Shown piece after piece: positions 1,433 to 64,000 of a DNA stretch of 64,000 nt. Under the pieces are notes generated by a model. That model had not been told where the DNA came from. It saw only the letters and a program-made list of their open reading frames with translations, and ran no database searches. Every line of letters starts with the position of its first letter. Within the stretch, counting starts at the first letter, position 1. The translations under genes were made by a program, and so were the position numbers. This DNA comes from Marsupella aquatica (lineage: Eukaryota > Plantae > Marchantiophyta): positions 5,717,327-5,781,326 of the forward strand of contig OZ316897.1 in NCBI GenBank assembly GCA_973895155.1. The letters are read 5' to 3'.

Positions 1433-3169
1433 CTTACGACACCGGGTAGAGGTTTGTCCCTGCCCTAACCCGACTAGGCACAACGTGGTGAACCCGAAAC
1501 TCTTTGCACCGGGCACATATTTGAATAGGTTGCTGGGCGACTTCTCCCAACAAATTAGTCGGGAAATGGGGGAGTTCATCGCCCACAAGGTGGCTTACTT
1601 CTTCAACCAAGAGCTGGTGGCGGTAGTAAAGGCAGGGCAGGCTCAAGTGGAAGCCACAACCAAGATTGAGTGATATCACGAGGAGGCAACCCAACTATTA
1701 GATAAAGCCTCAACTCAAGAGACCGAGCTGCAACTTCTTTGGCCTCAACTTACGACCGCTCTGGCTCAGGTCACCGATGCCAAAGCCAAGTTAGCCTTGG
1801 CCATACAAGCCGGAGCTAGAAAGGATGTCGAAATCTCACGGCTCCGGGCCCAGATTGACAGCTTGAAAGGACAAGCCGTAATCTGGCAAAAGAACGTAGA
1901 GGAGGCCAACGCTTGGGCCCAAAAGGATACAGCTGAGGTGGACACCTTGAAAGCAAAAGTGGCACGGTTTCTACAAGAAGCCGCTAAATAGGACCAACTG
2001 GTGGCACAACTGACGAGCAACAACCAACAGTTGGAAGAGGTGTGCTAAGATGCCGTGCAAACGCGGTGAAATGAGAGAACGAGTCTCTCCTAGACCAAGT
2101 CCAGATCCTCAAGCAAGACGCCAACCGGTTGAGGAGACAACGAGATGACCGCTCCAAGTCCCACTCGGGCGGGTCTGGCAAACATGCCAAACATTAGTGG
2201 TGTGGCAAGTTTAGGATAGCGTAGGTTTAGCCAAGGAAATTGGACACTACAGACAAATGGCAAAACTAGTCAGCAGCGCTTTCAACCCTAAACCCTAAAC
2301 CCTAAACCCTTTTAGTATAGAATCTTAGTATAGAAACAAGTCATTTTGTGGCCTGGCATTTAGCTGAAATTAGAATAGACTAGATTCAAGCACGTGACTA
2401 TTTCAGGCCATGACTCTTAGTTAGTATTTAGTGCACCCCCGGTAGAGGCAGCGGTGGGGGGGGGACTTTAGGTTTAGAATCGGGTATATGCGGATGTGCG
2501 GGGAGTCCCAACCTTAGTGAATGAAAGAGTACCACAGAGGGAGGGTACGACTAAGCTCTTTGGGCAAGTGCGGAGCCGGGCTCCGTTGTAGTGTATACTT
2601 TCTTGCCATTGGGCCTGTTTATTCTCGAAGAAGTCGAGTCAATTGTGTATGTGTGTATGACAAATTTCTAATTAAAACACTTTCTTCCATCATTTTCTTC
2701 GTGTAAACTGAGATTGTATGTTGTGGAATCTGTTACGCACGCGCATTTTATGTTTGATATGCGGGCAATTTCCTCCTAGGTATTGCCGGACCCAAGAAAT
2801 TGGTCATAAATCTCGTATACGGGTATAGAACGCTTGCCCAAACACATTGTACAAGCTATGCACGATCTGACGGTTGTGGATAGTGATTGCAAGCCCGGGT
2901 TAGATACCCATATCATTGGAGGCGGATAACGCAAAGGCTTAGAAGTCCTTAAGCCTGGGTTGATCCAGGCATTTACTTACGATATGTTCCGGCGGCGGAA
3001 CACAAAACATACTTGTGATGTGTGTAGAATTAGAATCGGATGCGGTTAGCGTCCAGTTACAGGAATAAGTACCGTTCGTACGTCCCTCCTTGCCCGAAAT
3101 CTCAATATTTACAAAGCCTATGGCCGCCTAAGCCAAAATCCGTGTAAGGGCGACTCTTTTGGCGTGACA
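1433..3169 (+). mobile_element. 5'-truncated LTR (copy D) of the ORF-bearing Tat-like LTR family
   Basis: ORFs 1485..1673 and 1797..1991 match the C-terminus of the 863-aa ORF (LNRLLGDFSQQISREMGEFIAHKVAYFFNQELV). The downstream DNA aligns with the reverse complement of 31028-31700 and ends ...GGCGTGACA at 3169. No PBS follows. Confidence 0.85.
2284..2310. repeat. Short plant telomere-type repeat (AAACCCT, about 4 units) inside LTR copy D
   Basis: aaccctaaaccctaaaccctaaaccct. Confidence 0.85.
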
Positions 3170-3894: not shown

Positions 3895-3930
3895 GTGCTA
3901 ATTATGCTATTCACCACTTATAAGAGACCT

Positions 3931-22413: not shown

Positions 22414-22698
22414 CGCTATTTTTCAGTGCATGCTATTTACTCCTCTAAAATTTCCTTAGCCCGATCGTATTCTGAAAAACAATCGAGCATTCCACCCTCT
22501 CTCCGCTTGCGCAAGCAGAATTTCTCCTCTACGTTTCACCTCATAGCAGTCGCAACCAGATGAATAACGACCACCATGCTGAACTGAGTCGAGTAACCTT
22601 AAGCCGAGTAATGAACAACCTGAAATATTCTCTCCTTTCCAAAAAATGGCACTCTAAATGAATCTCTAAAACAAAAATAATTCCTAACATGTTAACAT
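22414..22698. repeat. 285-bp direct duplicate of 17317-17601 (gypsy LTR segment)
   Basis: cgctatttttcagtgc...gttaacat occurs on both sides of the Bianca element with about 3 substitutions. Confidence 0.9.
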
Positions 22699-22960
22699 AA
22701 GCCTAAGTCTACATTCTTTCATCAATTCTAAAGGTGAAAACATTCTTTCACCAAAACTTAATTTTCTAGGAAACTCTAAAACCAGAACTTTTGAATCCAA
22801 ATAAGTTCTTTAACTCTCAACTAGTCTATTATATGAATAAATTTCTAATCTCATTTCTCTCATCTACTTCCCTCAATCTCAAATCCAGATTCTTTCAAAC
22901 AAGAAAAACAAGTCAAGTAAGACTAAAATTTCATTTCTCTTTGCCATGAATGCCACTCTC

Positions 22961-25900: not shown

Positions 25901-26456
25901 TTTCCCATTTTTCTTCTTAACATGCAGTAAACCACTGATTTGAGTATGGGGCTTCAGATCACTCAAGAATCTTCGCCTTCAACTTCTCCTTAAGTAATTC
26001 CATAAGCTTTGGCATTAGTGCCCGTGGAACCCGAAGTGGTCTCAAATCCCATGGAATATGTGGTACTGTAAAAATAATCATTGGGGTTACCTCTCTCGGG
26101 TTAACACATCCAATCTCATCTAAATTAAAGGAAAAAGCTTTCCCATGTCTACTTATCATCTCTTTAAACCTCTCTTTCTCTACATCCCAAAGTAATCCAT
26201 CATCTCCTACTCTAATCTGATCAAGAGTCTCTTCAGTGAACACATGCCCAATCCCTTTTGGGTCTCTCAAGCTAGGTTCTTCTCTAGCTTTTTCAATCAA
26301 CCCTCGAGCATCTAAGGGCAAAGGTACAGCTGCAGGTCTCACCTTCTTGTCAACTGTCTTATACTTTGTGTTCACATTAATTTGACTCCCTATAAAATTG
26401 CTAATCCCTCTATACAATTCCTTTCCAATTTCGATCTCACTCATTCCTCTTTCCAT
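22961..26456 (-). pseudogene. Nested gypsy pol (RT, RNase H, integrase), disrupted
   Basis: GDLYSGYDQF, PQDATNSVAHMQ, PFLDDIPIKG; RNase H VTVDSSPTAAGW; integrase HHCC (H..SAGH...CPVCQ), LDVVYMP, YNPEGNGKSERGH; GPF motif. Confidence 0.9.
24795..25153. mobile_element. 359-bp MITE with about 30-bp TIRs and a 4-bp TSD
   Basis: TIR GGTGGAAAGCAAGATTGAGGGGTACCAAAAA and its reverse complement; TSD GCTC (24791-24794, 25154-25157). Removal restores KALLSPPVLR in pol. Contains about 5 tandem units of about 21 bp (CTTTGAGGAAGTGT...) at 24950-25053. Confidence 0.9.
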
Positions 26457-26736
26457 CAGTTCTAAGGTTCGCTCTACTGTTTCCCCTATCCCAAACTCAT
26501 CTATATAGCCCTCTAAACACTCATCTGGTTCTATTCCTAATCTCTTATGTAATCTAGCTTCCTCTCTACATAACCCACGTACAATCCTTGTACAACACTC
26601 TCTTTTTCTAACATGGACTATAACTCTTCCAAACCCAAACCCAACAAAGGATGAAACAAAAATTTCTCTAACTCCCCTAATGTGGACGATTTTCCCGCCA
26701 TGGCGCCTTGTTCAGTCGTCTCCCTATTCAAGGCGC

Positions 26737-29178: not shown

Positions 29179-29627
29179 ACTATGGTCTCACTCTCTCTTC
29201 CCTCGAAAGTTTGAATCAACAAATCAGTCGTCTCCAATCTTTCGCAGTTGATCAGCCTCTCAGCTCTTCGAGCTGCCACTGCTGAACTGTCTCTCAAGAG
29301 ATCATGAAACCAAGTTCACCCTCTATCAATCAATCAATCTCTTATCTAATCAATCATTCATATTAAACAACCCTAATTATCTATTCTCTTTTCTAATTCT
29401 CTCTACTCATGGCTTGCCTTCTGCTCGTCTCCCTTAAGTTCTCAACCCTAAATGATCGTATGGTTCTCGACGGCCGTTCTTCTCGCTCTTCCCTAATCTC
29501 TACCTTATTCTCTTTTTCCCTCTCTAACTTAATCTCACTCGGAACCCCAATTTTCTCATGGTCGATTGTTTCTAATGGCTTACCCATTCACTAATCACAT
29601 GTCCCTAAAACTAATGATTCTGCGAGT

Positions 29628-29645
29628 TCCCCAGTATGGTCGCTA
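29628..29645 (-). promoter_or_regulatory. Degenerate PBS of the nested gypsy (tRNA-Arg-like)
   Basis: TAGCGACCATACTGGGGA lies 4 nt from the LTR end and resembles TGGCGAC...CTGGGGA Arg-type PBSs. Confidence 0.6.
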
Positions 29646-31980
29646 CTTATGTCCGGGGACCAGTTTAAAGCGGTATAAAAGTAGACCTTTTAATATTTTT
29701 AGGGACTTGTCAATCCATTCGTACTTTCGTTCCTTTTTTTCTTTTTTGTAAGCCTTCCGGTCTTCTCATTTTAAGTACGACTTAAACCTTCTTTGTGTCT
29801 TCTCGATGGTCTCTGTTCACTTGCTCTTTGGTCTTTCCTTTCTTTGTGTTCCTATCACTCATCTTCTAGTACCAGTCCAAGTGCCATGCGTTTTCCGTAG
29901 AACTCCTACTTGTTTTCTTTCTCAAGGAAAAATCATTCAGTCGGTCAATCAATCATCCAAGTCGGTCAAATCGAAGACTTCTTTTGTTTTTCGGAGTTCC
30001 AATAAACCAGACAGTGATTCCAAGTTGGGTTTCAACGAACTGTGGCAACGTAGTGTCGTTCACGAAGGTTTCCCCATCACGATCAATCTCGACTAAAGGC
30101 TGTCTGATGAGAGTTCAGCAAAACAATACAATTAACACCGGAATTCAACCCTCCCGTTTGTCTTAAGCTGTCAGTAGCTTTTTTGTTCTTCAGTCCTGCA
30201 CTCTTGAAAGCTTATTGTTCACTTCAAAAACTTTGGCTTTCTTCTTGCTTGTCGCTCGTCTGACTTTTCACCAAGCACTACTAGAATCCAATCAGGCATC
30301 CTCAACTTTAAGCAACTGTTCTTGCGCATTTCTTGTTCATTGCTCTCCAAGTTCTCTGGTTTTCTTGATATTGCTTTTCTTTTCTCGATTGTCCTCTCGT
30401 TCAAATTTGAATTCCCTCATGGTCATGCCAGTCGTTTCGTCTTGCTTGATACTTCCCTTCGGCGGTACGCCCTCCTATCACTCAAATCCCCTTCCCGTAT
30501 TGTCTTCTTTCTAATCTTCTCACATCTCCGCTGTTTTACACCATTCAAGCTCGTGTCAACTCCTTCTTCAGTCTTAATCGTCCCTTCCTTCAGAAAGAAA
30601 AGTTTTCGTATACTGTTTCACTTCTTTGCCTTCAGAATGCGAGTTTTTCCCGTTCAGCAATTTCCCTGCCCTCTGATCCTCTCAGAAGAAATTTATTTAC
30701 CGTCTCCTGATTCTCATCCTGCTTCCATTTAATCACCCTTGCGTTCCTTTCCTTCGCTTAAACTTGCTCCCTCTAACTTCCTTTCAGCTCCTCGCCTTCC
30801 CATCGCCCATTTCCTCTTCCTTCTGCTTCAACAATTGATCATTCGCCCTTCCTCTCACGATTTTTCACCCTAAAACTCCAGATTCTCATTCATTTTTGGA
30901 ATTTTCCTTCTCCCGAACGCTTCATCATAATCTGTCAGCCCGAACCTTCTCGCCCATCGCTATTTTTTAGTGCATGCTATTTACTCCTCTAAAATTTCCT
31001 TAGTCCTGGGTGGCAGCGAGTTGTACATGTCACGTCGTAGGCTTCGGCCTTAACTCAGACTTCAGCTTAGACGGGCACATCCCTCATAAATCTGAGGGTT
31101 CGGGCAGGAAGGGAAGCACGTTATACACCTTATTCTCGTAAACTAGCGCTAAGTGCGCATACTGCTAAATACGGACACCTCCTAGGTATGGTTTGTGTTC
31201 CGCCGCCGGAAAGTACCTTAGTCGATAGCAGGATCGACCCCGGCTTAAGGGCTTCTAAGCCTTCGTGCTGTCCGCCTTCGATCCGGATTCGATGATACAG
31301 GTCCTCAACCCGTGCTCGCAACCACTTACCCGCAGGCTGCACCCTGTGCACGTCTCGGGTAGTGCGTTCGGCCTGGCGCTGCCACCCATATACGAGAAAC
31401 CCACACACATATGCGCACACATGCATACAATCTCGATTTACACGAAGGAAAATGATGGGAAAGGATTTTACTACAAAGGGAACATATGCGTACACTTAGT
31501 TGACACGACAGCCCTGGAATGCACAGGTTCAAGGCCGAGGGTGCACACTACAATGGAGCCCGGCTCCGCACTCGCCCGGCGAGCTTAGTCCTATCCCCTC
31601 CCCTTGGTACTCTGTCATTCCCAGAGGTCGGGACTCCCCGCATGTCCCACGGATGTCCGACTCTGAAACTAAAAACCCCCCTGCCTTTACCGAGGGGTGC
31701 ACTAAATACTAAGAGCCGAGGAACGGGGTGTCCTCTCGCCGAAGATTCGCTGACTAAGGTCCTAACTAAGCTGACAGTCAGGCCGGAAAACGGCTGTGTC
31801 TTATTAGAAGATCCTAATCTATGCAGGCTGGACAGCAGGGCAGCACTGCTGTACCTAAGGCAGGTGCCTGTCCCAAGAGCCTGACTAAGCCAATCCTAAT
31901 CCTAATCTATTCCTACTCCGCCGCTAATGCCTGGCACGCTTGCCAGAGCCGCCCGAATGGGAACGGCCATCCCGCTGCCT

Positions 31981-34572
31981 TCAAAGCCTGTCATTGTCCG
32001 CTTTGAGGAGCTGGACCTGGTCCAGCAGAGATTCGTTCTCTCGCCTCGCCGCGTCCGTCTCCTCTGCTGCCTCCTGACATGCCTCCTCCAGCTGCTGGGC
32101 GTCGTTCGTCAGTTTACTCGCCAGCTGGTCCTGCTTCTCGGCCTCGGTTTGGAGCCGCGCCATCTCGGCCTGCAGCATGGCTATCTCCGTCGCGTCCCGC
32201 TGGGCTCGCTCCTCGGCCTCCTCCAGGTCTTTCTGCCAGGTGACAGCTTGTTTCTTCAAACTGTCAATCTGGTTCCGGAGTCGTGTAATCTCGGCCTCGT
32301 TCCCAGCTTTGGCCTGTTCGGCTAGGGCGGTAAGAGCGTACGCCTTTGCTAACAACTCATCGGCGGCTGCAATCTTGGGTCGTAGTTGCAGAAGCTCAGC
32401 CTCTTGAGCCGCCACTTCGTTCTTTAGGTACACGGACTCCACCCGGTACCGCTCTATCCTCTGAAGGGCCTCCGACTGGGCCCGACCTGCCTTTACGGCG
32501 GCAACCAACTCCTGATTGAAGAAATAGGCTACCTTCCAGGCCATGAACTCCCCGGTATCCCGGGCAATTTGATGAGAGAAATCTCCCAGAAGCCCGTTCA
32601 AAAACGTACCCTGTACGAAGAGTTCCAGGTGGTCCAAGTTGTGCCTGTCCGGATTTGGGCACGGGCAGACATCAACACGCGCAGGGGCCGGGGCAGTGAC
32701 GTCCAGCCCTGGGGACATAACGTTGGAAGGGGCTGGAGTGTCCTCCTGCAGCGATGTCTGGTTCTCCGGAATTGCCACCGGCGGGTCCTTGGGAGACCCG
32801 GGTTCGGGTAAGACCTCTGCCGTACCAACTTCTATACTTAGCCCGGCTAGTTGGGTCGCATCAACGGTTGCGACGACCGACCCCTCCGGCGCCTCCTCGT
32901 TTATGATTACAGCTATTTGTGGAGGTGGGGTGGGTGAAGCTGGCGTGTCCACTGGACTTCGGGCCTCGGGTTGGGGCCGTCTCTCCAATGCCGGAAAAAC
33001 CCACCTAGCTGGGACCAGCTTTGTAACGTTGATGCGGGGAAGGGTTCGTCGATCAAACCGGGCGTACCACTCAAGAATGATTTCGATATGGCTAGCGAAA
33101 TACGCCTTCCCGCCAATGTACAGCGTCTTCCTTCGCCGCTCCATCTCTTCATGGAATTTCTTAGCGAAGTATGACGCCCATTTCCTAGGTCGATAGTTCT
33201 CGACCTGGATAACCTGGGCGGCGGAGATCTCCCCCCGGGGTTCCATCATGTGGAGAGCGTACCTCTGGAACTCCAGCCGCTCAGCTATCTCGGGCATGAG
33301 GCAGGTCCTCATCACGAACCCGTTGTCTACGGATCCCTCTGAGGGAAAACTTGAAGATTGGTACTTGGCCCCCTTGCCCCCGGGAGCCCATGATTCGACT
33401 CGATGGTCACCTTCGGGTAACCCGAAGATCATCTTGAGCCGTTCTTCTATGAGGGACATATTCCTTCCCCGCAGCCGAGTCTGTTGACGTACGTCATCAT
33501 AATTCTTGACGAATTCTGTCATGTCCTCCCCGTAGTACCTGCAAGTGTTCCAGGGGAGAGAGGTGAGGTGCTCAAATCCCTGAGTCTTTAGGTACACCGC
33601 ATGCTTGGGATGGAGGATGTTGCTATGAACGTTTTCCCCCATGCGATGCATCGTCACCTTGGCTACGGCTACCGTGGCCAACGGTAACCCGGATGCAGTG
33701 GCGGATTCCTTCCTCTTCTTTCCCCGTGACTGACTCGGGGAAGGTGATACTTCCCCATCCTCCCGATCGGGCCTGGGGAGTGCCACTGCGGTTGGTAACG
33801 GGCCCGGGGCGGCCACGGTCACTATGTTGTCTGCTGGGGCCGCTCCTGGGGTCAGAGCAGGGGGTGGGGACGATATAGTGTCGGCCCCCCGAGCGCTTGT
33901 TCCTCTGGGCCGCCTGGTCAAGGGTGGGGTAGCCTCGTCGTCATCGCTAAGATCCACAGTGTTGATGACGGAGCGTACCTGTGCTGGCTGGGTGATAGGT
34001 GGTGGGGTTTGGCTAGGCTGCGGCTGAGGCTGAAGCTGAAGCTGAGGTTGAGGCTGGGGTTGCATGGGCACGGGTACGGGTACGGGCCCGGCTGAGTTGG
34101 TCATGTTGGTTGATGGCCGAGTTCCCATGAAGCTCTGCAGGTGCTGGTAGAAGTTCTCCGAAGCGAGTGCGGACGCCCTTGTCGAACGGTTGGTACTGGA
34201 CTCGCCGTTAATGACAGCCCGAACCTGGGCAGGGATGTGGTCGAAGTGATGTCGCTGCAGGTCGATTGTACCCGGGATATTGAAGACCTCGTCCGGAAGC
34301 CAAAGCAATGCTTCCCAGAACCTGATATATTTGTCTCCGTTGAAGAAGTACCCAGATACCTCAGCTGGTCGGTAAAGCTTGCTCTGAGACGGGTAGTCAA
34401 AGTTAAGGACGTAGTGGTGTCGTCCTGCTAGGCGGATGGCTCTCTCGTATTCGCATTCAATCTCGTATCGGCGCGGGTTGGCGTGTTTCAATGAATCGGC
34501 CAAGTGCCTTCCGGTAGATAGGAACTGCGTCCAGAATCGAATGGCCGAGCTGGAGAGGATCGTGTGCGACAT
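31981..34572 (-). CDS. Intact 863-aa LTR-encoded accessory protein (N-terminal domain, Pro/Gln-rich linker, KKRK NLS-like motif, PMD/plant-transposon-protein-like domain, C-terminal coiled coil)
   Basis: Uninterrupted ORF with TATAAAAG about 100 nt upstream; homologues in three other LTR copies in the window. The domain assignment is by eye (LKTQGFEHLTSLPW...EFVKNYD...RGRNMSLIEERLKMIFGLPEG). Confidence 0.85.
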   Translation of the reverse strand: MSHTILSSSAIRFWTQFLSTGRHLADSLKHANPRRYEIECEYERAIRLAGRHHYVLNFDYPSQSKLYRPAEVSGYFFNGDKYIRFWEALLWLPDEVFNIPGTIDLQRHHFDHIPAQVRAVINGESSTNRSTRASALASENFYQHLQSFMGTRPSTNMTNSAGPVPVPVPMQPQPQPQLQLQPQPQPSQTPPPITQPAQVRSVINTVDLSDDDEATPPLTRRPRGTSARGADTISSPPPALTPGAAPADNIVTVAAPGPLPTAVALPRPDREDGEVSPSPSQSRGKKRKESATASGLPLATVAVAKVTMHRMGENVHSNILHPKHAVYLKTQGFEHLTSLPWNTCRYYGEDMTEFVKNYDDVRQQTRLRGRNMSLIEERLKMIFGLPEGDHRVESWAPGGKGAKYQSSSFPSEGSVDNGFVMRTCLMPEIAERLEFQRYALHMMEPRGEISAAQVIQVENYRPRKWASYFAKKFHEEMERRRKTLYIGGKAYFASHIEIILEWYARFDRRTLPRINVTKLVPARWVFPALERRPQPEARSPVDTPASPTPPPQIAVIINEEAPEGSVVATVDATQLAGLSIEVGTAEVLPEPGSPKDPPVAIPENQTSLQEDTPAPSNVMSPGLDVTAPAPARVDVCPCPNPDRHNLDHLELFVQGTFLNGLLGDFSHQIARDTGEFMAWKVAYFFNQELVAAVKAGRAQSEALQRIERYRVESVYLKNEVAAQEAELLQLRPKIAAADELLAKAYALTALAEQAKAGNEAEITRLRNQIDSLKKQAVTWQKDLEEAEERAQRDATEIAMLQAEMARLQTEAEKQDQLASKLTNDAQQLEEACQEAAEETDAARRENESLLDQVQLLKADNDRL

Positions 34573-34672
34573 TCAGAGGAGATAGTAGTGGCGACCTAGA
34601 GAGAACGAGAGAGCTGGGGTCGAAGCTGGCGCACGGACTGATGGACTGGTGCACTACAAAGGGTTGGCTCCC

Positions 34673-34680
34673 CTTTTATA
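34673..34680 (-). promoter_or_regulatory. LTR TATA box
   Basis: TATAAAAG 358 nt inside the LTR 5' end; conserved at 40683-40690 in LTR B. Confidence 0.7.
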
Positions 34681-35038
34681 CTTTGAGGGCTCGTCGATCC
34701 CCGACGTCTCCTCGACGCCCATAGGTTGAACCGCTCACGCTTGTGGTGTACCGACCACTCCGCCGGTCTGAGTCAGCGTGCGTCAGTGGCCGCTTCCTTA
34801 AGTTCGTTATACGGACCCGAGGGAGGGGCCCCTCCACGCTCGTAACCCGGGTGTGCGAATAGTGACCCGTCGCCAGCCCGAACCTGAAGTCCCCCTTATT
34901 GCCTAATGATGCCCTACCCCTAATGATTACCTAAATACTATCATTATGCTAATAATAGCGGCCTAAGACCCACCTAACGCGCGTGCCGAGCGCAGTTAGA
35001 TTGAATCACTCATTAACCGCCGTACCGGCGGCGTCACA

Positions 35039-35473
35039 GTACCATGGACGAGCTTCTCCCTGCATCACTCCTGGGAGGACGGTTAGCTTAATGGTGTCTT
35101 CCCCATTGGCCTTAGCAGTAGCTTCAAACTCGTCCAACCATTCGTTCGGATCATCCCCATGATGCCCTTTGAAAGGTCGATAATGAAACCGCGACCGTTG
35201 TGATATTTGTGGGGAGCTGGGGCAGCGCGAGCCACAGCAGGTGGCACGGTTGCCATAGGTACCGGAGGCGGTGGTACGTGGCACTAGCGGTGGTGTAGCA
35301 GGGACTGGAGCAGGACCGGCTGGACCGGACCCCGAAGGTCCCGGTGGTATGTTCATTCGCCGAGGCAATTTCGAATCTTCCGAGCCTGAAGAGTCAAAGC
35401 TTGTTGTGGTTGCACTCTCTCGTTCACTGGTCAATCTCCTCAAGTAAGCTGCTTGAGAACGAGTGACGGGCAT
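35039..35473 (-). pseudogene. Element B gag N-terminus (continues at 31027-31004, then 15179 downward)
   Basis: MPVTRSQ...YRPFKGHHGDDPNEWLDEFEATAKANG...GEARPWY, a retrotransposon capsid motif. Confidence 0.88.
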
Positions 35474-35571
35474 TTACTTGTACAAATGTGATGGTTAGTA
35501 ACTCACTAGGGTCTAGTGTACTCTGTCTAGGTGCACCCGCACATGTCTCCCCTCTACTATACGTAGAGTGC

Positions 35572-35589
35572 CCCCTCCATCTAGCGCCA
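35572..35589 (-). promoter_or_regulatory. PBS of element B, complementary to the 3' end of tRNA-Asn
   Basis: TGGCGCTAGATGGAGGGG, 13 nt from the LTR end; one mismatch to the plant tRNA-Asn end CCCCTCCTTCTAGCGCCA as I recall it. Confidence 0.85.
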
Positions 35590-36473
35590 AAAACAAAGGC
35601 TATGTCACGTCGTCAGCCTAGGCCTTAACCCGGGCTTCGGCTTAGACAGGCACATCCTTTGTCAATATGAGGGTTCGGGCAGGGAGGGAGGCACGGAATG
35701 CACCTAACTCACATAAACTAGCGCTAAGTGCGCCTATTGTCATATATGGACACCTCTTAGGTATGGTTTGTGTTCCGCCATCGGAATGTACCTCAGTCGA
35801 TAGCAGGATCGACCCCGGCTTACAAGCTTCTAAGCCTTTGTGTTGTCCGTCTTTGATCCGGATTTGATGGTATGGGTACTCAACCCGGGCTCGCAACCAC
35901 TTACCCGCAAGTTGAACCCGGTGCACGACTTGGGTAGTGCGTTCGGCCAAGCGTTGGCACCTATACACAAGATTCACACATATACATACGCACAAGCATA
36001 CAATCTCAATTTACACGAAGGAAATAATGGGAAAGGATTTTACTACATAGGAGACATATGCGTACACTTAGTTGACCCGAAAGCTCTAGAATGAACAGGT
36101 CCGAGGCCGCGGGTGTACACTACAACAGAGCCCGGCTCTGCACTCACCCAGCGAGCTTAGTCCTACACCCTCCCCTTGGTACTCTTTCACTCCCAGAGGT
36201 CGGGACTCCCCGCACATACCGTGGATGTCCAACACTGAGACTAAAAATCCCCCTGTCTCTACCGAGGGGTGCACTAAATACTAAGGGCCGAGGAATGGAG
36301 TGCCCTTGCGCCCGAAGATTCGCTAACTAAGGTCCTAACTAAGCTGGCTGTCAGGCCGTAAAACAGCTTGTCTTATTAGAAGATCCTAATCTACGCAGGT
36401 TGTACAGCATGGCAGTGCTGCTTTAACTAGGGCAGGTGCTTGTCCCTATAGCCTAATTTAGCTACTCCTAACT

Positions 36474-39400
36474 CTATTTTAATTGTACTCCGCCTCTAAT
36501 GCCTGGCACGTTGCCAGAGCCGCCTGAGTGGGAGCGGCTATCCCGCTGCCTTTTGAGCCTATCGACGTCCTGCTTGAGTAGCTGGACCTGGTCCAGCAGA
36601 GATTTGTTCTCCCGCTTCACCGCGTCTGCCTCTTCCGCGGCCTCCTGGCATGCCTCCTCCAGTTGTTGGGTGTCGCTTGTCAGCTTATCCACCAACTGGG
36701 CCTATTTCGTGACTTCTCCTTGAAGCCGCGCCATCTCTGCCTTCAGGGTGTCAATCTTGACTGTGTCCCATTGAGACCTGGAGTCAGCTTCCTCCAGATC
36801 CTTTTGCCAACTGACGGATTGCCCCTTCAAACCATCAATCTTGGTTCGGAGCCGCACAATCTCGACGTCCTTTCCGAGCCCGGCTTGTACTACTAACGCT
36901 GCTTGGGCCCTAGCCTTGGCAACCTGGTCCTCCGTGGCCGTTACCAGAGGCCATAGTTGCTAGAGTTCAGCCTCCAGGGTTGCCACTTTGTCCTTCAGGT
37001 AGGCAGACTCAACCCGATATTGCTCTATTCTCTGCGCTGTCTCTGCCTGCGCATGTCCTGCCCTTACAGCCACAACCAACTCCTGGTTGAAGAAGTAGGC
37101 CACCCTCCGGGCCATGTATTCCCTGGTGTCCCGAGAGATCTGTTGCGAGAAATCTCCCAACAACCCGTTCAGAAATGTGCCCGACGCAAAGAGTTCCAGA
37201 TGGTCTAGATTGTGTCCATCTGGATTCGGGCACGGGCAGACTCCAACCCGTGCGGGAGTGGGAGTGGACATATCCAGCCCTTGAGGTAAGTCGGTCGAAG
37301 GGGCTGGTTCCACTGGAGGCGGGCGGTTCTCCTGCACGACCGTAGGGGGTGGCGGAATCCCCTCGGCTATCGTGGCATCTGCTTTGGGTATGGCTTCATC
37401 CGGCCCGGTTTTGATTGCATTGAGTCGTAGAACTCGACTACCTTAACACTTAGCTCCGGCGTCACTGACTTCGACGCCGAGCTCCCTTATGGTCCAGGCC
37501 CGGATAGGCCATCCATGGAGGACTTAGCATGGGGAGACTTGTGGGCAATGAGACGTGGCACTAGCGAGGCATGGGGCCAAGCTGGAGACACAGACTAAGG
37601 ACTTGGACTAGCCTATGGCTGGTTGGGTCAAGGGGAAATGGGCCGGGCTCAAGGGTGGTCGTACGGACCATCGGATGGGCTTTGAGTTTTGAGGGCATGG
37701 GAGTGAGCTCCTCTTGGGCCCAAGGCCAATGGAGTTGATCCCATTGGCAACGGACGCTTGGGGCGCAAGTTGTGGCCCGAGTTGGGTTGGGCCGGTCGGG
37801 GGCCCCGAGCGGCGATCAGACCTGAGAGCCTAGGCATGAGCACTGGGTCGGCCCGGTCACAACGGGCTAAGGCACTCCGCTTGCGGATGCCTATCAAGAA
37901 AGTTATGGGCGTTGCCAATTGGTGGCGCGCCCATTATGCGCGATGGGATCCGGGTTGGGGGCCAAATGTTTAGGGACCAAAGCTGGTCCGGGGGCGGCAG
38001 GTCTCCAGAAGCATATATGAGGGGAGTGGTGTCTCCCTGGGGGCTAAGGGCGAGCCGAAGTCGTGAGCCGCGGCGATCGCGACACTAAGGGAAACCGCCA
38101 AACAGAAATGGCGATATCTTCCCAACGGGAAGTCCATTGGAGGACTTCTTAGGTGCGTTGGAAAGCCCTTGAGGAGGGCTACGCCCTCTTGAGCTCAGAT
38201 GGGTCTGGGGGTGCCATTGATGCTCGTGGTTTGCGGGTGTTAGCTCACCCGTTTGCCAAATCCTGCCGAACAGCAGCCAAGCCGCGTTCAGCCTCCCAAG
38301 GGAGCTTGCATTGGGGAAGCAAGGCCAAGTAGGTATGGAGGCTGAGTCCCAAGGGTGCTCGGTCCCTAGACCATCAATGGGGCAAACCGGGAGTTGGTGT
38401 TAGAGTCGGGCCCGTTCTGGTCCGGCGTGTTGAGACAAGCTTGGGACAAGCTTTAGGACAAGCTACGCTAATTGGGCCATGAGCATGTCCTGAGGTCAGG
38501 GCGGTCAGTTGGTGATGGATAGGTATGAGGGGGATCCCTTGGCCGCGCCCAAGGAAGGAGCTGTCCTGGATGGACAGTGGGCGTGGGTTCTGGTTCCGGC
38601 TTATGGCATCGGGAGGACCTATCACTGACCTATTTACCAACGTCTGTTGAGCTTGAGTTAGGATGCTAGACTTGACGAGTTCTAGATCCAAAGGGGTTAC
38701 TTACCAAGGTGCTTGGTTGTTTGTGCAGACAATGAGGACCGTTGAGTAGCGGTCGTGTAGGTGAGCAAGTGCGGCTTCGTATGGGAGTGGCCGTTGGTGG
38801 TGCTAGGGGCACTTGGACGCTTGCTCGAGGTATTCCGTGGAGGCGTTCGGGCACCAAGGGCACTTAGGCACAAGTGTTGGGATTGGTGAGGGCGCTGGGT
38901 GGCAAGGTCCACCACTCATTGTCCCGATTGATTGCATCTAAGGTTGCGATAATGTCAATGGGTATGCTTGGCGGGGCGGCAGCATCGGGTTGTGGGGCCG
39001 GGGTAGCAGGGCTTGCAGCTGCCAGACTTCGCGGTCGCCTCACTTGGGCTGGGAAAACCCATTTTGGCGGGGTCAGCTCGGGCTCGTTGAGACGCAGAAG
39101 GCTTCGGCGGTCAAAATGAATGTACCACTCGATGATGATTTTGATGTGGCTAGCAAAGTACGCCCTTCCGCCAAGGTACAAAGTCTTCCTTCTCCGCTCC
39201 ATCTCCTCGTGGAACTTCTTGACGAAGAAGGACGCCTTCCTGGGCTGATAGTTCTCCACCTGGATGACCTGAGCGGCCGATATTTCTCCTCTCGGTTCCA
39301 TCATGTGGAGGGCATACCGCTGGAACTCCAGGCATTCTGCAACCTCCGGGATGAGGCACATCCTCATTAAGAACCCATTGTCCACTACCCCCTTGGCTGG

Positions 39401-40584
39401 GAAGCTAGATGACTGGTATTTAGCTCCCTTGCCCCCAGGAGCCCGTGATTCTACCCGGTTTATCCCCTCGGGTAAGCCAAAAATCATCTTCAGACGTGCC
39501 TCCTTGAGACACATTACTCTCCCATGCGCTCGGGTTTGTTGACGGGCCTCGTCGAAGTTCTAAATGAACTCCGTCATATCCTGCCCGTAGTACCTGCTTC
39601 CGTTCCAAGGGAGAGAGGCGAGGTGCTCAAACCCTTGGGTCTTCAGATAGCATGCATGCTTGGGGTGGAGGATGTTCTTGTGAACGTTGTCCCCCATGCG
39701 ATGCATGGTCAGCTTGGCTACCGCAAACGTGGCCAAAGGCAACTCGGATACGGTTGCGGGCTCCTTCCTCTTCCTACCCCGAGACTGATTCCTGGGGTGA
39801 CTAGAAGAGGGGGATATCTCTCCATCCTCTCGGTCCGGTGGTGGTAGCGCAACTGCCGTGAATATTGGTGCCAAGGCCGCTAGAGTTACCGTGTTATCCC
39901 TCGGGCTTGCTGGAGTGGTGCTGAGTTGTTCGGCGCTTGTTGAGTCGTACCCCGCGGCCGTCAATTCAGAGGAGGGTGAGCCTCCTCATCTTTGGAGCTA
40001 ATATTCACCGCATTCACCATGGATCGTACTCGGAGAGGTGGTGGGACTGGTGGCAGGGACCGGCTTGGCTGAGGCCGAGGAGGTGTAGGTGCGGGTACGG
40101 GCACGGGTTGGCCGGCACTGGTCGCTGATGGTAGAGTTGCCGTGAAGTTCTACAGGTGCCGGTGGAGGTTTTTCGAAGCAAGTGAAGACGGCCCTGTCGA
40201 CCGGGCAGTGTTGAACTCGCTATTGATGATAGCCCGGACCCGAGCAGGGATGTGGTCAAAGTGGTGCCGCTGCAAGTCAATCGTGCCCGAGATATTGAAG
40301 ACCTCATCCGAAAGCCGAAGCAATGCTTCCCAGAAGCCGATGTATTTGCCTCCGTCGAAGTACTCTGATACTTCTTTGGGTCGGTAAAGCTCGCTCTAGG
40401 ATGGGTAATCAAAGTTAAGGAGATAGTGGTGTCGTCCTGCTAGGCGGATGACTCTCTCGTATTCGCGTTCGATCTCTTATCGGCGCGGGTTGGCATGTTT
40501 CAATGAGTCGGCCAAGTGCCCTCCGATAGACAGGAACTGAGTCCAGAATTGTATGGCCAAACTGGAAAGGATCGTGTGCGACAT
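36474..40584 (-). pseudogene. Decayed copy of the LTR-encoded accessory gene
   Basis: ORF fragments 39560..39964, 38864..39514, 36960..37337 and 36474..36695 align with the 863-aa protein; ATG at 40584. Confidence 0.87.
37423..38916 (+). mobile_element. 1494-bp AGT...ACT element (copy 3)
   Basis: TSD CATTG (37418-37422, 38917-38921). Confidence 0.92.
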
Positions 40585-41974
40585 TCAAAGGAGATAGCAG
40601 GTGACTAAGGAAAAAGCGAGAGAGCCGGGGTCAAAATTGGCGCGTGGACTGAAGAACTGGTGCACTGCAAAGGATCGGCCCACTTTTATACCCTGAGAGC
40701 TCATCGATCGCCCGACATCTCCTTGTCGCTTATAGGCCGAGCCTTTCACGCTCGCAGTGTACCGGCCCCTTCGCTGGTACGGGTCAGCTCATGTCAGTGG
40801 CCACCTCCCGGAGTTTGTTATACGGACCAAGGGAGGGGGAAAGGGGGCCCATTACATGCTCGCAGTCCGGGCGTGCGAATGGCGACCCGCCGCCAGCCCG
40901 AACATGAATTCCCCTTATTGACTAATGATTTCCTACTCATAACGGCTACCTAAATACTGTCATTATGCTAATAATAATAGCCTAAGATACCCCTAATGCG
41001 CATGCTAAGCGCGGTTAGACCAAATCACTCATTACACAACTAGATTTTGTTGCGTCGGATGCTAACAATACCTCCTCATAATCGTTGTTAATATAATTAA
41101 CGACTTCCATGACTACGTTTATAACTACATCCGACGTAACGGCAATGTCGGAGAAATCTAAGCGCCAATTGCCCCCATTTTAACATCGCTAGAAACACGT
41201 TTAAAATTAACGTCTCTAGATGAGCTGTCCTAAATGTCGTTTTGGTCGTCGTTCAATATTAACATCGTATTAGAGGACGTAATGTGTTTAGGGTATAACG
41301 ACTGTGATGCCTAGACAGGAATCACTCGGCCAGTTAAGTGGGTAAAGCAGGAAGGCACCCTAGGAACACCTTAGTATAGGGACAAAACAAGGAAAATATA
41401 AACCATTAGGGGCAACCATGGAACCCGGGCCGAGGCCGGAGGTAAGGACGCTGAGGGTGAAAACTCGATTAGGGTTAGGGCGCGTTAAGCATCGGCGGCT
41501 AGGAAGGATCAACGGGAAGAAGGACCGGCAGAGGAGAGTGGTAAGGAGCGCTTGCAGGAGATGGTGGCTCATTTGCGAACACGAACTAGGCAGACGACTA
41601 CGGGAGGCCAACTACTGTCAGCTGCTTAGGCAAGCACTCGGGGAGAGAGTAGATACCGACGATCAACCTAAGGAGGGTATGAGCAACGTCAATCAAGCGA
41701 CACATTTCTGGGGATGCCTATTCGAACGGGCAACTGAGTACATCAAGACTTACGAGGACGAGGAATCAGAAAGGGCAGCTCGAGAACGGCAGGAGCTCGC
41801 TCGATTGTGGGAGCTGCAGAAGACGGCTTTCTTAGGAGGCGAACTCATCAAGGACGAGTTCCTGTGGACGCCTACCTCCAATCAACTCGACGATCTTCTG
41901 TTTTGCAAAGACAACGTCGTCGGCATCCGAGAGGCCATCAACACTAGAAGAATCCGAGGTGAACTGAGATCGCA

Positions 41975-46585: not shown

Positions 46586-46657
46586 CTGTGTTGCTTCAGA
46601 ATTACTTTATTACACATCCTTCCCCTCACTAATGTCCATGCAAACAATTCACATTAC

Positions 46658-58692: not shown

Positions 58693-61600
58693 ACATGTGG
58701 GCAGCCATCGAGTGACTTAGCAAACAGGTTGGTTTGGACATAAAAGAACCAATGCAAATGACTTAGCAAAAAGTTCAATGTGGGGAGAGTGCACTTTGGT
58801 CAAGAACAAGGCCAAATATAGTCAGGTATGAATCCACATTATAAGTGAAAGTACCCACCATTCTGATGAAAACCCCCATATTTATACCCATTATATTTGG
58901 ACCTCGCCAACCATGAGTGTGCAATATGTAGTTGCACCGGGAGTTGCATATTAGGGATTGGCATCCGAAATTGGCTAATGGGGTATGCATGCTGACGGAA
59001 TTTTAAAAAATGATGTCCAATTCATATTGCACTATTGTGGAGTAACTAACATAACTTACCTATTTCTTACTTACCAGTGTTACAATAGCGACATTGGATA
59101 AAGTTGTAAGCATGACTTCCCACAACCTCACCAAAACTTAGTTGGTATGATGTAACTAACATGACACCCACAAACTTGGAGTCGCATATTTATGAAGGTC
59201 TCGCACAAGTCACATAGGGGAGGGTCTCAGAATGGGTGGTTTTCTTCTAGTGCAAGAACTGCAACGACATACACTGGGAATTAAAGGGTAGCACGGAAAG
59301 GTGGACCCAGGCAACGGTGCTAGGAGAAACCTCCACGGCAACAGAGATGAAGAGGAAGGGAGCCGTCAACGATGAAGCCACCCCGGCAAAAAGAACGAGG
59401 TCGGCGGCACCAAAGAAGCCAGCCGAGCAGCAGAGCAGGAGGCAGGGAGAAGCCGAAGAGGAGGAGGTTGATCCCATCAAGGCCATTCCAACCAGGGATG
59501 ACACCTGGAAGGGCTGGGCGGCAACCCTACCGGTGGAAGTGCAACTACATTTTGCACGGGAGGAGGATGCATGCTTTACGGCAATGCAGACCAAGAAGTA
59601 TCAAGGCTTCATGGCCGGATCCGGCTTAGAGGCCTTTGTAAGATTACCATGGCTGAAGCCGGAGGTACCGGAGTCAGACCTATTAGAATTCGTGGGGTCA
59701 TGGGAACCCGAGACCAATTGCACGAGGATATATGGGAAGGATTTCTATCTTACTCCCAAGGTAATTGCCGAAGTGTTTGGCTTGCCGATAGGCAATAAGA
59801 CCAAAGTTGATACCAGGAAGACCTTGCCTGACAAGGAGTTCCGGTCGTTCCCCGGGCCATCAACGAAGAATGGCTTCTTCCGGAACACCTGCACCAACCC
59901 GCACATAGGAGAGATGATCGACTTCTTGCGGGTGACCATGCATTGTAACTTGCCGAGGGCAGAGATCGGCAAGGCACAGGTCTATCTGGCAGAAAGGCCA
60001 GACCCAAGCCGGGACTACAACGGGTACCTCCTCAACCAATTGAAGAAGATCTTAAAGGAGGAGCAGCAGGTAATCGGCATGGGGAGCGTGTCGCGGCTTG
60101 GCTATCACATGCCGCTGTTGTGCCGGTATGCCAGAGGTCAGACTTTTGCCCCAGTACTTCCCCTGCAGGTAAGGGCACCCGAGGAAGCTCCAACGCCAAG
60201 GCCGTTGGCTGAGAAGCCTCAACCACCTGTTAGCCCTACGATCGAGCAGGTGTTTAGGCCCAGGAAGGAGGACTTGCCGATGCAGCAACCAGGCATGCAG
60301 AGTCTGCTGAAACTACTGGAGAAAGAAAAGAAATCGGCATCGGCAACAACAATGGCAACGACAACAATGCAGGACACTACTACAGAGGTAGGCCTACACC
60401 GGCTCACAAGAGAAAACCCCTTTGCTGGAGACAAGGAGAGAATCAGGCCGGAATCCAAGCCAGGTGTTTGAATGTATGTGGGAATCTCAAGCTCCGAATC
60501 TGAGGCAGAATTGCCTGAAGCTCCTACCGACGAAGAGGAGAGGGAGAAGCCGGACGTCCAAGAAGTAGAGGAGGCAGTGGAGGACTGCAACCATGATAAT
60601 TCCGGCTATGGGTCGGACCATCACGTTCCAGGAGTAAGGACCTGTGGCCGGTTTGTCCCCACACTTCCAAGGGTAGTGCGAGGGGACCCCAACCAGCAGA
60701 GTAGCCCTGAGTCTCCCCCACCAGATGTTGCTCCCCCGAGCTTTGACGGCATAAAACAGACGGTGCAAGAATTTCAGGAGCGAATCAGGCAGGAAGAGGA
60801 GGCAGCCCTGGCTAGGGAAAAGGATTTACCAGGAGGAGATTGGCCGGAGGACATCAGGCGGCTAGCCAAAAAAGGAAGCAAACCTCTAGCCACGATTGAA
60901 GAGATCCGCAAGACGGCTTGGGAGCAGAGGCCGCGATGGGCGATGCCGATCACTTCTACTTACTCCACCTACGCTAAGAATAGAGCCATGGAGTATGGTG
61001 AGATGTGTGGGGAACTTGCGCTCGGCATCTTTGGAGAGGAGTTGGAGGTAGGACCCTTTTTCCATAGGGAGCAGTTGGAGAAGCACCAATTAGAAGAAGC
61101 GGTGGCTTTAGAGAGAAGCAAGAAGGACGAGGTCATTCGGCGGCTTAGGAGGATGGAAGCCAAGATTGAAGATCTAAGGGCGGTCAAGAAAGCCCAAGAT
61201 GAACTGCGGATTAAACGGCATGAGCTGAACATCATGCAGGGGCAGTTGGACACCGCGCAGGCTGATAATCAGAATATCAAGGATAAACTGACTCAGACGC
61301 AGGGAGAGTTGGCCGACACGATCAAAGAGAGGGAGAAGTGGAAGCAAGAGCTGAAGAATACAGAGGAGGCCCACATAACAGCCAACAGCCGGGCCATGGC
61401 GGAGACCCAAAGAAAGGAATGGGCGTTGAAGGGGGAGCTCGAGAAAATCCGCGGAGCCCTTGAGCAGAAGGAGGCCGAGTTAGGGAAATCCTATCAAGGG
61501 ATTATGGCGCTGCAGCAGGAGCTTGCGTCCTTGACGGCCAGCTTCAAGGCCGACCTAAGGGAGAAGGACGAGATGCTCGATCAGACTTACGCCAAGATGA

Positions 61601-63294
61601 ACCAGATGGAGTCTGTCATCATTGCAGAGCTCGACAAGGAGCTAAGAGCAACCCGGGAGGAGAGGACTACCTTGAAACAAGAACGGGAGGAAGCCCAAAA
61701 GGAACTAGAGGAGGCACGCAAGGACCTGGATGAGACCCAGGAGGAGTTGGAGGAAATCACGAGGAAGATGGAGAACCTCCAGCGGCGGGCCGACAACCAA
61801 ACGGAGCGGCTGAAGAAACAAGCCGCAGCATTTAAGTGCTTGTCTTCATCAGGCCCAACTCCAATTGGGGCAACCAAGTTACCAGGAGTGGTACTGGCCG
61901 AAGAAAAAGCCGCGCCACCTGCACCAGTGCCGGAAGTAAGTGGGAAGGGGAAGGGACCAGCTGCCGAACCAGAAAAGAAGAAAAAGCAGAAACCTTCAGG
62001 GTCAAGGAGTAATCCGACTCCACAAGCCGTGGTGACCAAGGAGGTAGAACCAGCACCATCCTCCGGCATGAATACGGCAATAGATCCCGCTATCATCACA
62101 GGTGGGGGTGGTGTGTCCAAGCCGAACTACTCAGTAATGAGGCCGGTATTCCAGATCCGCCTCTTGAGCAGGCCGGGGAGACCGTAGCCGAGGCTGAGGC
62201 CGTAACCGATTCCCGAGCCGATGCCGACGCCGATGGTGGACCCAGTCAGGCCAATGGAGAGTTGACTCAGTCAAGGGCAGGTAATCTGTCAGAGAATGAA
62301 CCTACGGCAGTGGCTGAGGAGGAAGCGTTGGGGGCGTCCATTAAGGATCCTCCACCGGTGTCGTGACGGTGCAAGGGCGCCGTTCCTTTTAGGGAGGGAG
62401 GACGTGGAGGGAGGAGGCATGAGTGGGCAGGGCGGGCGCTGATCTCCAAGTTTAGGATTAGGATCAGGACCAGGAGCGGCCCTGACACTTAGCTTAGTGG
62501 GATTGCGGTTCCACTGGTAGGAGCAACACTTGTGCTCCTGCCTTGCTGTACATAGGTAGATTCGGGCAAGTAGATTACTGTTAGGTAGATTAGGCTTACG
62601 ATGCAAAGAATGGCGGATCCACTACCAGGATAAGTACCTGGGTAGCGGGGAGCTCAGGGCCTCTTCTTTAGCAAGTTTTTAGTTTGCACCAGCCGGGCTG
62701 GGATCAAGTAGTACGAGAAACTCTCGGTTAGTCATACAGTGACCCTTGTGTATATTCATGTTTCCTCATGCCTAAGAGCTGAATAGAGTTGGCCTCACGG
62801 CTTAGTTCGTAGAGCTTGTGTATGAGATGTACTGTTTGTGTGGCAAGTGCATGGTATGACTCAGTCAGAATGAGTCATTTTGCTATTTGTGTGTTGCATT
62901 AACTTGTGTGAAGAGTGCCCACATCAACCAGAAGGAAGGAAAGTAAGCAAGGGAGTGAGAGTTGGATGTGTCGAGCTGAGAGAGGTCTTAGCGGCTTAAC
63001 CAAGCCTATTGGGGATCATTCCGGCGGCGGAATCCAAACATACCTAACAAGACGGAGGGGAAGACAGGGGAAGACAGGGGAAGGCCTAGATTAGGCCGGC
63101 TACGTATCTCATGACCCAATGAAGGATCTGTCCAGTATATGTGTGTAAAATGTTAACAGTAGTAGTAGAAGATTAGCAGCGTCCCATGCCGCTAAGCCGC
63201 GGAAACGGCCTCGCCAAGCACCAAAAACCTGCGGGAATCGGCTTGAGCTGGGGGGTTTCTTGGGTTTAGGGAGCCATGGGACGCACCACATTTT

Positions 63295-63312
63295 TGGCGC
63301 TAGATGGAGGGG
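63295..63312 (+). promoter_or_regulatory. PBS of element C (tRNA-Asn)
   Basis: TGGCGCTAGATGGAGGGG, identical to the element B PBS. Confidence 0.88.
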
Positions 63313-63359
63313 GCATTTCTTAAGCCGTGAGATATGAAGTTAGAACGGAAGCGTAGGTA

Positions 63360-64000
63360 ATGACTAACCTTACGCCGAGGGAAGAAAGAGTGATTCAACG
63401 GGAGAGAGCTTGACTGCAGCAGCTCGCCGGGTGGCATGATACACAGCGACTGAGAGGGGCAGAAAGAGCTGGTAGCTCCGAAACTGGAAGTGGCGTCGAA
63501 GAAGACATACCTGAAGAAGAGTCGGTAAGGAGAAGTGAGTCTCCAACCGACATGGGGGAACCAGAGGCACGGCCAGACGAGAGGCCAGGGACCAGATTGA
63601 GCCAGCGGTCGCGCATACATTACAAGGCATTTCATGGGAGAGGAGATGAGGATCTGGACGAATGGTTGGATGATTTCGAGGGAACCGCTGCAGCAAATGG
63701 AGAATCGGCCATCAAGATGCAGATTCTTCCCGGCCTGTTCAAGGGTGAGGCTAGGCCTTGGTACAGAGCATTAGATGTGGAAGATCAAGCCATCTGGGAT
63801 ATCTTCAAAACACTCTTTGTTAAGGAGTTTCGACCAATTGGAACTTCAGAACTAGCAGTGCTGAAGTTGGGACGACTTCGGTTCAAGGAGAACAAATCCT
63901 TCAGGAAGTTCTTGCAACGCTTTCAGAAACTGGTAAGACGTACAAAGACCAATGCATCTGAAGGTATGCAACTTCAATGGTTGGTGAATGCTTTGCCACA
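63360..64000 (+). pseudogene. Element C gag, 5' part (runs off the right edge; one early stop)
   Basis: SQRSRIHYKAFHGRGDEDLDEWLDDFEGTAAANG...GEARPWY, homologous to element B gag. Confidence 0.88.

Follow-up and report, generated by a model that had tools for sequence, protein, structure and literature searches.

Structure of the locus

We analyzed a 64,000-nucleotide stretch of the genome of the liverwort Marsupella aquatica (contig OZ316897.1 of assembly GCA_973895155.1, forward-strand positions 5,717,327 to 5,781,326), referred to below as the window, in which a unit of 4,011 bp with one long open reading frame (ORF) interrupts the gag gene of a Ty3/gypsy retrotransposon. This unit, which we read as a solo long terminal repeat (LTR), and the features related to it are listed in Table 1. 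A preliminary description of the window, made from the sequence alone, had given the unit TG...CA ends, a 5-bp target-site duplication (TSD) and a position inside gag. The ends were read again: the plus strand starts with TGTCACG and ends with GTCACA, and the minus strand accordingly runs TGTGAC...GTGACA, a 6/7 terminal inverted repeat. The position inside gag was also found, as the alignment of the interrupted gag to intact gags stops at a conserved ARPWY motif, exactly at the unit edge (35039). The duplication is present in an imperfect form, GTACA versus GTACC, in which four of five positions agree (chance ~1.6%).

When the window was compared with itself, homology between the unit and a second copy (copy 2) ended exactly at both termini. 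The three copies found in the window share the terminal nucleotide and have three different flanks, one of which consists of a primer-binding site (PBS) and gag. Contigs of four public runs were also aligned to positions 30400-35700 of the window; being contigs only, they are silent on expression, transcription start sites and ends. Their summed depth increased from ~400 outside the unit to >100,000 from position 31028 (about a 100-fold step) and dropped at 35038, which was reached by 16 contigs that then diverged into unlike continuations (loose ends). These sharp depth steps and divergent flanks indicate that the unit is a very high-copy repeat with sharp ends, occurring in at least four differently labelled organisms.

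The ORF, which had been described as uninterrupted and as occupying 65% of the unit, is indeed intact on the minus strand and encodes 863 amino acids. At the local GC content a random codon is a stop with a probability of ~0.035, so that 863 open codons in a row are impossible by chance, and this explanation was rejected. The promoter motif that had been placed about 100 nucleotides (nt) upstream was located as well: TATAAAAG, a TATA box, lies 108 nt before the ATG of the ORF and is kept in copy 2. Despite 20% divergence, the unique 3' region (U3) of the unit and that of copy 2 have conserved blocks in common, including GGTATAAAAG and the ATG context. Transcription probably starts at this conserved TATA box, ~80 nt before the ATG. 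The exact 863-residue product was absent from protein records.

Table 1. Positions in the window of the solo LTR, its parts and the related features (position 1 is the first nucleotide of the window).
Feature	Position	Strand	Details
Solo LTR	31028..35038 (4,011 bp)	sense = minus	TG...CA ends; homology with two other copies stopping exactly at the unit's ends; contig-depth steps
Left TSD, GTACA	31023..31027	.	read directly
Right TSD, GTACC	35039..35043	.	read directly
U3 and 5' leader	34573..35038	-	TATAAAAG at 34680-34673; TATA box and ATG context kept in copy 2
Intact ORF, 863 aa	34572->31981 (31981..34572)	-	2,592 of 4,011 bp (65% of the unit)
NLS-like KKRK, residues 285-288	33709..33720	-	by sequence only
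Globular domain, residues ~300-510, predicted VANC21-like (probably PMD-like) fold	33043..33675	-	AlphaFold2 model, fold searches
C-terminal coiled-coil-like region, residues ~690-863	31984..32505	-	composition, weak Pfam coil matches
3' non-coding LTR part (U5 or end of R)	31028..31980 (~950 bp)	-	blocks of 84-87% nt identity to copy 2
Host gag, N-terminal part, cut by solo LTR	35039..35473	-	ATG at 35473
PBS, TGGCGCTAGATGGAGGGGGCA, 21 nt	35569..35589	-	13 nt after the end of copy 2
Copy 2, 5' LTR of host gypsy element	35603..41038	-	colinear with the unit, 74-78% nt identity
Copy 3, partial, inverted, diverged LTR of the same family	1443..3169	+	65-70% nt identity
Homologous ORF of second LTR family	59317..62187	+	384 aa, one stop, then 571 aa; upstream of PBS 63295
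Second-family PBS	63295..63315	+	LTR end at 63290 (...CACCACA), then TTTT
Second-family gag	63570..63998	+	downstream of PBS 63295-63315
NLS, nuclear localization signal; PMD, plant mobile domain; R, repeated region of the LTR; U5, unique 5' region; aa, amino acids.

Selection on the ORF

The ratio of nonsynonymous to synonymous substitution rates (dN/dS) had been proposed as a check, with a value of about 1 and no transcripts named as the refuting outcome. In codon alignments of the unit and copy 2 it was 0.24 for residues 1-226, 0.08 for residues 226-534 and 0.17 for residues 579-863, and the comparison with copy 3 gave 0.18, all well below that refuting value, whereas shifted-frame controls of the same alignments gave 1.0-2.0. 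Differences in the ORF affected 34-55% of third codon positions versus 15-30% of positions 1 and 2. A different picture was obtained for changes private to the solo copy. Scored against the family majority in public contigs, these comprised 13 nonsynonymous and 6 synonymous changes in a small, selected sample, were mostly CpG-type transitions and look like neutral decay after insertion. Low dN/dS between subfamilies together with neutral private changes indicates that selection acts on the transposing lineage and not on the solo LTR, whose ORF is still open because the copy is young. For the family's lineage the ORF is a genuine gene, under selection along active lineages, and the earlier proposal that each solo LTR is a working promoter-plus-gene cassette receives no support from selection.

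The non-coding ends of the LTR also showed a pattern of conservation. Positions 31028-31740 and 35603-36312 (copy 2) are 84-87% identical, whereas synonymous divergence in the ORF approaches saturation (dS 0.7-2.0), which suggests either cis-acting constraint or recombination at these ends. Besides, the 1.4 kb of the LTR that do not code (31028-31980 and 34573-35038, minus strand) contain the hexamer ATTAGG five times in a single orientation (0.33 expected); it is found 0 times in the 2.6-kb ORF and three times in copy 2. It may serve as a weak lead to a candidate binding motif of the LTR-encoded protein.

Other copies, the primer-binding site and the host element

Copy 2 is the 5' LTR of the element whose gag is cut by the solo LTR (the host element). 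Its ORF is dead, being disrupted by an in-frame stop and by a 1.5-kb insertion at 37423-38916. The 21-nt PBS that follows copy 2 is part of a 25-nt stretch that recurs exactly on the plus strand at 63291-63315, and its first 19 nt recur in two elements (L003 and L004) of the liverwort Calypogeia fissa. TGGCGCTAGATGGAGGGGGCA may correspond to tRNA-Asn, as the preliminary description had it. A search with ARAGORN detected no tRNA-Asn gene in the window or in the C. fissa loci, its sole match being a tRNA-Ser-like stretch within the 1.5-kb repeat described below.

At the amino acid level, the N-terminal part of the host gag is 60% identical to a C. fissa gag that is intact, and equally to the second-family gag (63570-63998). 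The host element goes on with CCHC, protease (PR) and reverse transcriptase (RT) at 14674-10156, and nothing of it was seen after RT. Because it is truncated at this point, neither its 3' LTR nor a full-length member of the solo LTR's family is found within the window. In copy 3, residues 632-863 of the ORF are recognizable in a frameshifted form; this copy ends at GTGACA like the unit, with no PBS after it.

A second LTR family with a homologous ORF

The window contains a second long unit (~58.7-63.3 kb) that is unrelated to the solo LTR as a sequence and carries a homologous ORF, followed by the same PBS and a related gag. The second-family ORF has 27% identity to the first over the core domain (tblastn E 2e-17) and the same layout of domain plus coiled coil. 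The LTR of this family possibly starts near 58696.

Sister elements and relatives of the ORF in other liverworts

A profile of the ORF domain was searched against 1.8 billion representative proteins and yielded 69 relatives; all those with a species name came from liverworts (Calypogeia fissa and Riccia sorocarpa). Database entries of the C. fissa homologues bear the label 'unnamed protein product'. A homologue search with residues 300-863 gave no match, probably because the candidates were saturated by coiled-coil words. In C. fissa, the surroundings of ORF relatives were analyzed at five loci (L001-L005). Full-length sister elements were present at L003 and L004, with the gene order gag-CCHC-PR-RT-ribonuclease H-integrase (IN), whose RT is 69-74% identical at the protein level to that of the host element in the window.

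Both sister elements have direct repeats at their two ends. In L003, positions 8738-10288 correspond to 19927-21557 (94% identical), and in L004, 9016-10509 correspond to 20413-21893 (96.5% identical); each repeat runs to the edge of the retrieved DNA. The downstream repeat is located right after integrase, behind the polypurine tract (PPT) AAGTGGGGAG, and opens with TGTGAGGCCCC, for comparison with the opening of the unit in the window, TGTGACGCC. The PBS, at 13656 in L003 and 14151 in L004, is found ~4.9-5.1 kb past the LTR start, so that the LTRs of these elements are ~4.9-5.1 kb long and contain the whole ORF. The called genes (P0008, 10001-11557, and P0078, 10001-11893) fall entirely within these LTRs, and both LTRs of each element visibly include the initial 290-510 nt of the ORF. 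The presence of the ORF in both LTRs is therefore supported for these sister families. This had been predicted for full-length members generally; it holds for L003 and L004, and was not seen for the solo LTR's own family, as the host element in the window is truncated after RT.

Other relatives were less complete. At L005 (P0013) the ORF is present and gag-pol is not nearby, and two Logan contigs carrying relatives (L006 and L007) had neither a poly(A) tail nor a PBS and gave no ground for reading them as transcripts. In another C. fissa family (L003 70-3395, and L001/L002) a homologous ORF is situated 1-4 kb downstream of integrase. In this P0012-like case the ORF may be internal, at the 3' side, or the element may be old and rearranged. 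In Riccia sorocarpa, a weak relative of the domain (KAL3685530.1, P0058; E 6e-5) is part of a 781-residue protein annotated as DDE_Tnp_4 (Harbinger-type). By analogy, this combination of domain and transposase may parallel the PMD-transposase fusions of angiosperm Mutator-like elements.

Layout and predicted fold of the encoded protein

The first 130 residues (1-130) are kept between copies and match no known domain. They are followed by a proline-rich stretch (residues ~160-290) that includes the NLS-like KKRK, a globular domain, another proline-rich stretch (~520-640) and the C-terminal region, in which E, K, Q, R, L and A make up 57-82% and proline 0. The KKRK of the preliminary description was located by sequence, and its coiled coil corresponds to the last ~170 residues, which are coiled-coil-like by composition and weak Pfam coil matches (GAS, FlxA).

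We modeled residues 290-570 with AlphaFold2 using 47 aligned relatives. The mean predicted local distance difference test value was 85.9, with a core above 90. When the model was compared with the Protein Data Bank (PDB) by Foldseek, the sole plausible match was VANC21 on its target DNA (9LNJ; E 0.05, probability 0.94, template modeling score 0.44), the next match having a probability of no more than 0.03. Independently of Foldseek, VIA-align placed VANC21 (9LNK) at Z 8.1 over 215 aligned residues (root-mean-square deviation 4.5 Å, 10% identity), and the next chain at Z 2.1. VANC has been reported to be structurally homologous to MAIN, and the modeled domain therefore probably has a fold of the PMD type. 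The proposed PMD-like domain is consequently favored at the level of fold, although no match to Pfam PF10536 was obtained.

Other elements in the window

A second, unrelated gypsy element (16084-31006, minus strand) lies in the same gag, ~20 nt from the solo LTR. Its LTRs are 1.3 kb long, 95.5% identical and without an ORF; no convincing TG...CA terminus or TSD was found at its ends. Three copies of a 1.49-kb repeat, at 3930-5428 (+), 11217-12683 (-) and 37423-38916 (+), are 84-91% identical and have AGTC...CACT termini with perfect 5-bp target duplications in all three cases (GACCT, AATAT and CATTG). One of them sits within the ORF of copy 2 and another within pol of the host element, dividing each in two. 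The repeat includes a tRNA-Ser(GGA)-like stretch of 92 nt at 38411-38502. It probably represents a different family, either as a solo LTR or as a small non-autonomous retroelement.

A 285-bp direct repeat (17317-17601 and 22414-22698, 99% identical) surrounds a copia-type gag-IN-RT region at 18453-21966. It is made up of the gypsy LTR's final 49 nt and 236 nt of gypsy internal sequence, and is thus no copia LTR pair; it reflects a duplication of the insertion site or a feature of the assembly. Finally, the segments 42808-50404 (-) and 50811-52956 (-) hold pieces of a CACTA/En-Spm transposase (Transposase_21, DUF4218, DUF4216), followed on the same strand by ORFs with BRCT and NSD-type PHD finger domains. 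These ORFs may stem from a host gene captured in part, or belong to a neighboring gene.

Comparison with known systems

The classic retroviral 'LTR ORF' is sag of mouse mammary tumor virus (MMTV), a U3 gene whose 3' LTR copy is expressed, by way of transcripts that are spliced or come from an internal promoter. Like sag, the liverwort ORF is complete within the LTR and hence occurs twice per element. The two differ in that sag belongs to an animal retrovirus, encodes an unrelated protein and is located in U3, whereas the liverwort ORF follows the TATA box of the LTR itself (R/U5) and takes up 65% of the LTR.

Among plant elements, extra ORFs of Ty3/gypsy retrotransposons, including ORF1 of Ogre, were reportedly described by Steinbauerova in 2011, and also by Neumann in 2019 (PMC6317226). 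The Ogre elements (Tat lineage) resemble the liverwort families in having a sense accessory ORF upstream of gag, very long LTRs, a PMD-type domain and no assigned function for the ORF (PMC6317226). PMD is present in 57% of Ogre elements, within extra ORFs that lie upstream of the polyprotein or downstream of it, inside the internal region (PMC6317226), and in angiosperm gypsy elements it forms clades PMD-A1 and A2 (PMC5418596). In contrast to the liverwort ORF, which is upstream of the PBS in both families of the window and in C. fissa, ORF1 of Ogre is internal, downstream of the PBS, present in one copy per element and lost in solo LTRs. The liverwort ORF further differs by having no Pfam PMD match; in addition, the sister element yielded no aRNH, and its host belongs to the liverworts and not to the angiosperms.

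VANC21 of the Arabidopsis element VANDAL21 (PDB 9LNJ/9LNK; PMC5735166, PMC10398659) is likewise a transposon accessory protein, and resembles the modeled protein in the predicted fold and in a predicted coiled coil. VANC21 is a sequence-specific anti-silencing protein that binds arrays of a 9-nt motif in the non-coding parts of VANDAL21 (PMC5735166), and it is encoded near this DNA, as the LTR protein would be near the non-coding DNA on which it would act. VANC proteins are reported to be structural homologues of the PMD protein MAIN and are predicted to oligomerize through the coiled coil (PMC13547354). On the other hand, VANC21 belongs to a DNA transposon (a VANDAL Mutator-like element) known from dicots only and contains DUF1985 and DUF287, whereas the LTR ORF is part of a retrotransposon, gave no match to either domain and is ~10% identical. 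In addition, DNA binding and anti-silencing have been demonstrated for VANC21, and would be candidate activities of the LTR protein. MAIN and MAIL1 (PF10536) are a further comparison: the fold is probably of the same PMD type, through the reported homology of VANC with MAIN (PMC13547354), and PMD is known from gypsy elements (PMC5418596). Unlike the LTR ORF, which has no PF10536 match, MAIN and MAIL1 are host genes acting in silencing.

Interpretation and alternatives

We consider it likely that the unit is a solo LTR of a high-copy, liverwort-type Ty3/gypsy family and that its R/U5 part contains an accessory gene whose product has a VANC21-like fold and would act in trans on the family's own LTRs. 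Identification of the unit as an LTR, as the preliminary description had it, is based on the common termini with different flanks, the second family with its ORF-bearing unit, PBS and gag, and the C. fissa sister elements. Since the ORF lies inside the LTR, between the TATA box and the LTR 3' end and upstream of the PBS, it is copied to both LTRs by reverse transcription and survives LTR-LTR recombination; the earlier view that the gene is duplicated in each element and retained in solo LTRs is upheld by this position.

In the proposed mechanism, every LTR would initiate transcription shortly after its TATA box, with the 863-residue protein as the first cistron and gag-pol ~4 kb downstream. 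The protein would consist of the N-terminal region, a proline-rich linker with KKRK, a VANC21-fold (PMD-type DNA-binding) domain and the C-terminal coiled coil. It would enter the nucleus, oligomerize via the coiled coil and bind DNA of its own family, and such binding would favor expression of the family in trans, e.g., by countering silencing as VANC21 does for VANDAL21. The role of a chromatin or anti-silencing factor, already suggested as a candidate, would gain support from the modeled match to VANC21. Two arrangements of the transcript may be considered. A poly(A) site within the LTR after the ORF would make R longer than 2.6 kb and would permit a monocistronic mRNA from every LTR; a poly(A) site in the 3' LTR only would place the ORF in U5 and restrict its expression to genomic-length RNA.

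Several observations weigh against this interpretation. The TSD is imperfect, and no full-length member of the solo LTR's own family is present within the window. The order of copy 2, PBS and gag is as claimed earlier, but the PBS does not adjoin the copy directly: a PBS is usually 0-5 nt from the LTR end, and here the spacer is 13 nt. In the P0012 case of C. fissa (L001/L002), the ORF is found ~4 kb after integrase, and no matching 5' repeat was detected in the 3.8 kb upstream of the degenerate PBS (L002). No RNA run among the public runs on record contained the unit 31028-35038, and the neutral appearance of the solo copy's private changes argues in the same direction. With regard to the protein, no informative Pfam family, including PMD, DUF1985 and DUF287, was found for the whole ORF (E<=0.01), the domain (E<=1) or 25 relatives (E<=0.01), and single-sequence and profile searches of PDB sequences gave no match, including none to VANC21. 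The ESM Atlas also returned no usable match for the ORF protein. The VANC21 match is unique and moderate, and points to a common fold and not to a common activity.

Three alternatives were weighed with these data. It is somewhat unlikely, though the strongest of the alternatives, that the LTR architecture is correct and the protein, like the PMD-bearing ORF1 of Ogre with its unassigned function, has a role in the replication cycle other than anti-silencing. It might carry RNA or a pre-integration complex into or out of the nucleus, tether the latter to chromatin during integration, or act as a coiled-coil scaffold. A fold match carries no information on activity, no function has been assigned to the PMD ORFs that angiosperm gypsy elements carry (PMC6317226, PMC5418596), accessory proteins of the Athila and VANC kinds are predicted to form coiled-coil oligomers that make many host contacts (PMC13547354), and a long coiled coil with KKRK is compatible with many nuclear roles. 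Yet the sole structural relative in PDB is a sequence-specific DNA-binding anti-silencing factor, and no evidence leads toward any particular alternative activity.

The idea that the ORF is a passenger, i.e., a host gene captured by an ancestral LTR and hitch-hiking with no role in transposition, appears improbable. PMD does move between host genes and transposable elements in phylogenies of the Nicolau/Ikeda type (PMC5418596), and the one weak Riccia relative is fused to a DDE_Tnp_4 transposase; but a useless 2.6-kb ORF would not remain open, and dN/dS is 0.08-0.24 across LTR subfamilies with saturated dS. Moreover, ORFs with the domain and coiled coil occur in at least three LTR families (23-31% protein identity) from two genera of liverworts, and the gag/RT lineage and PBS that go with them are the same in every case. 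Even less credit, to the point of rejection, is due to the reading of the unit as an independent terminal inverted repeat or other non-autonomous element that merely adjoins gypsy sequence. The imperfect TSD, the 13-nt PBS spacer and the lack of a pair of units around an internal region within the window would be in its favor. It is contradicted by the unit end adjoining an identical PBS and gag in two families and by the sister elements that carry the unit at both ends, directly after integrase and PPT, and we discarded it; TG...CA termini with a 5-bp duplication and the lack of any transposase also speak for an LTR.

Implications for liverwort retrotransposons

Full-text literature searches, which most subscription journals lay outside, did not turn up any account of plant retrotransposon LTRs that contain a protein gene. 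In plant LTR retrotransposons, accessory ORFs have been described as internal and single-copy, with no assigned function. A gene within the LTR doubles the dose per element and is kept in solo LTRs, which are usually viewed as bare regulatory relics. It also forces a rethinking of the length of R and U5, of strong-stop DNA synthesis and of gag-pol expression. In its most far-reaching form, which we put forward tentatively and regard as unlikely on present data, the hypothesis is that a liverwort gypsy lineage moved an accessory gene into its LTR, that each 5', 3' and solo LTR became a self-contained promoter-gene unit for a DNA-binding protein of the VANC21 type, and that hundreds to thousands of copies jointly supply a trans-acting anti-silencing or chromatin-targeting factor. 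If this is true, R or U5 would exceed 2.6 kb, and the downstream gag-pol would have an unusual mode of expression.

Such LTR genes may also be mistaken for host genes by annotators. Finally, the link to the VANC21 fold is relevant to how the plant mobile domain arose, which has hitherto been traced within angiosperms only. It also suggests that early-diverging land plants may have retrotransposons equipped with sequence-specific factors for anti-silencing or for chromatin, a function so far shown only for Mutator-like elements of Arabidopsis.

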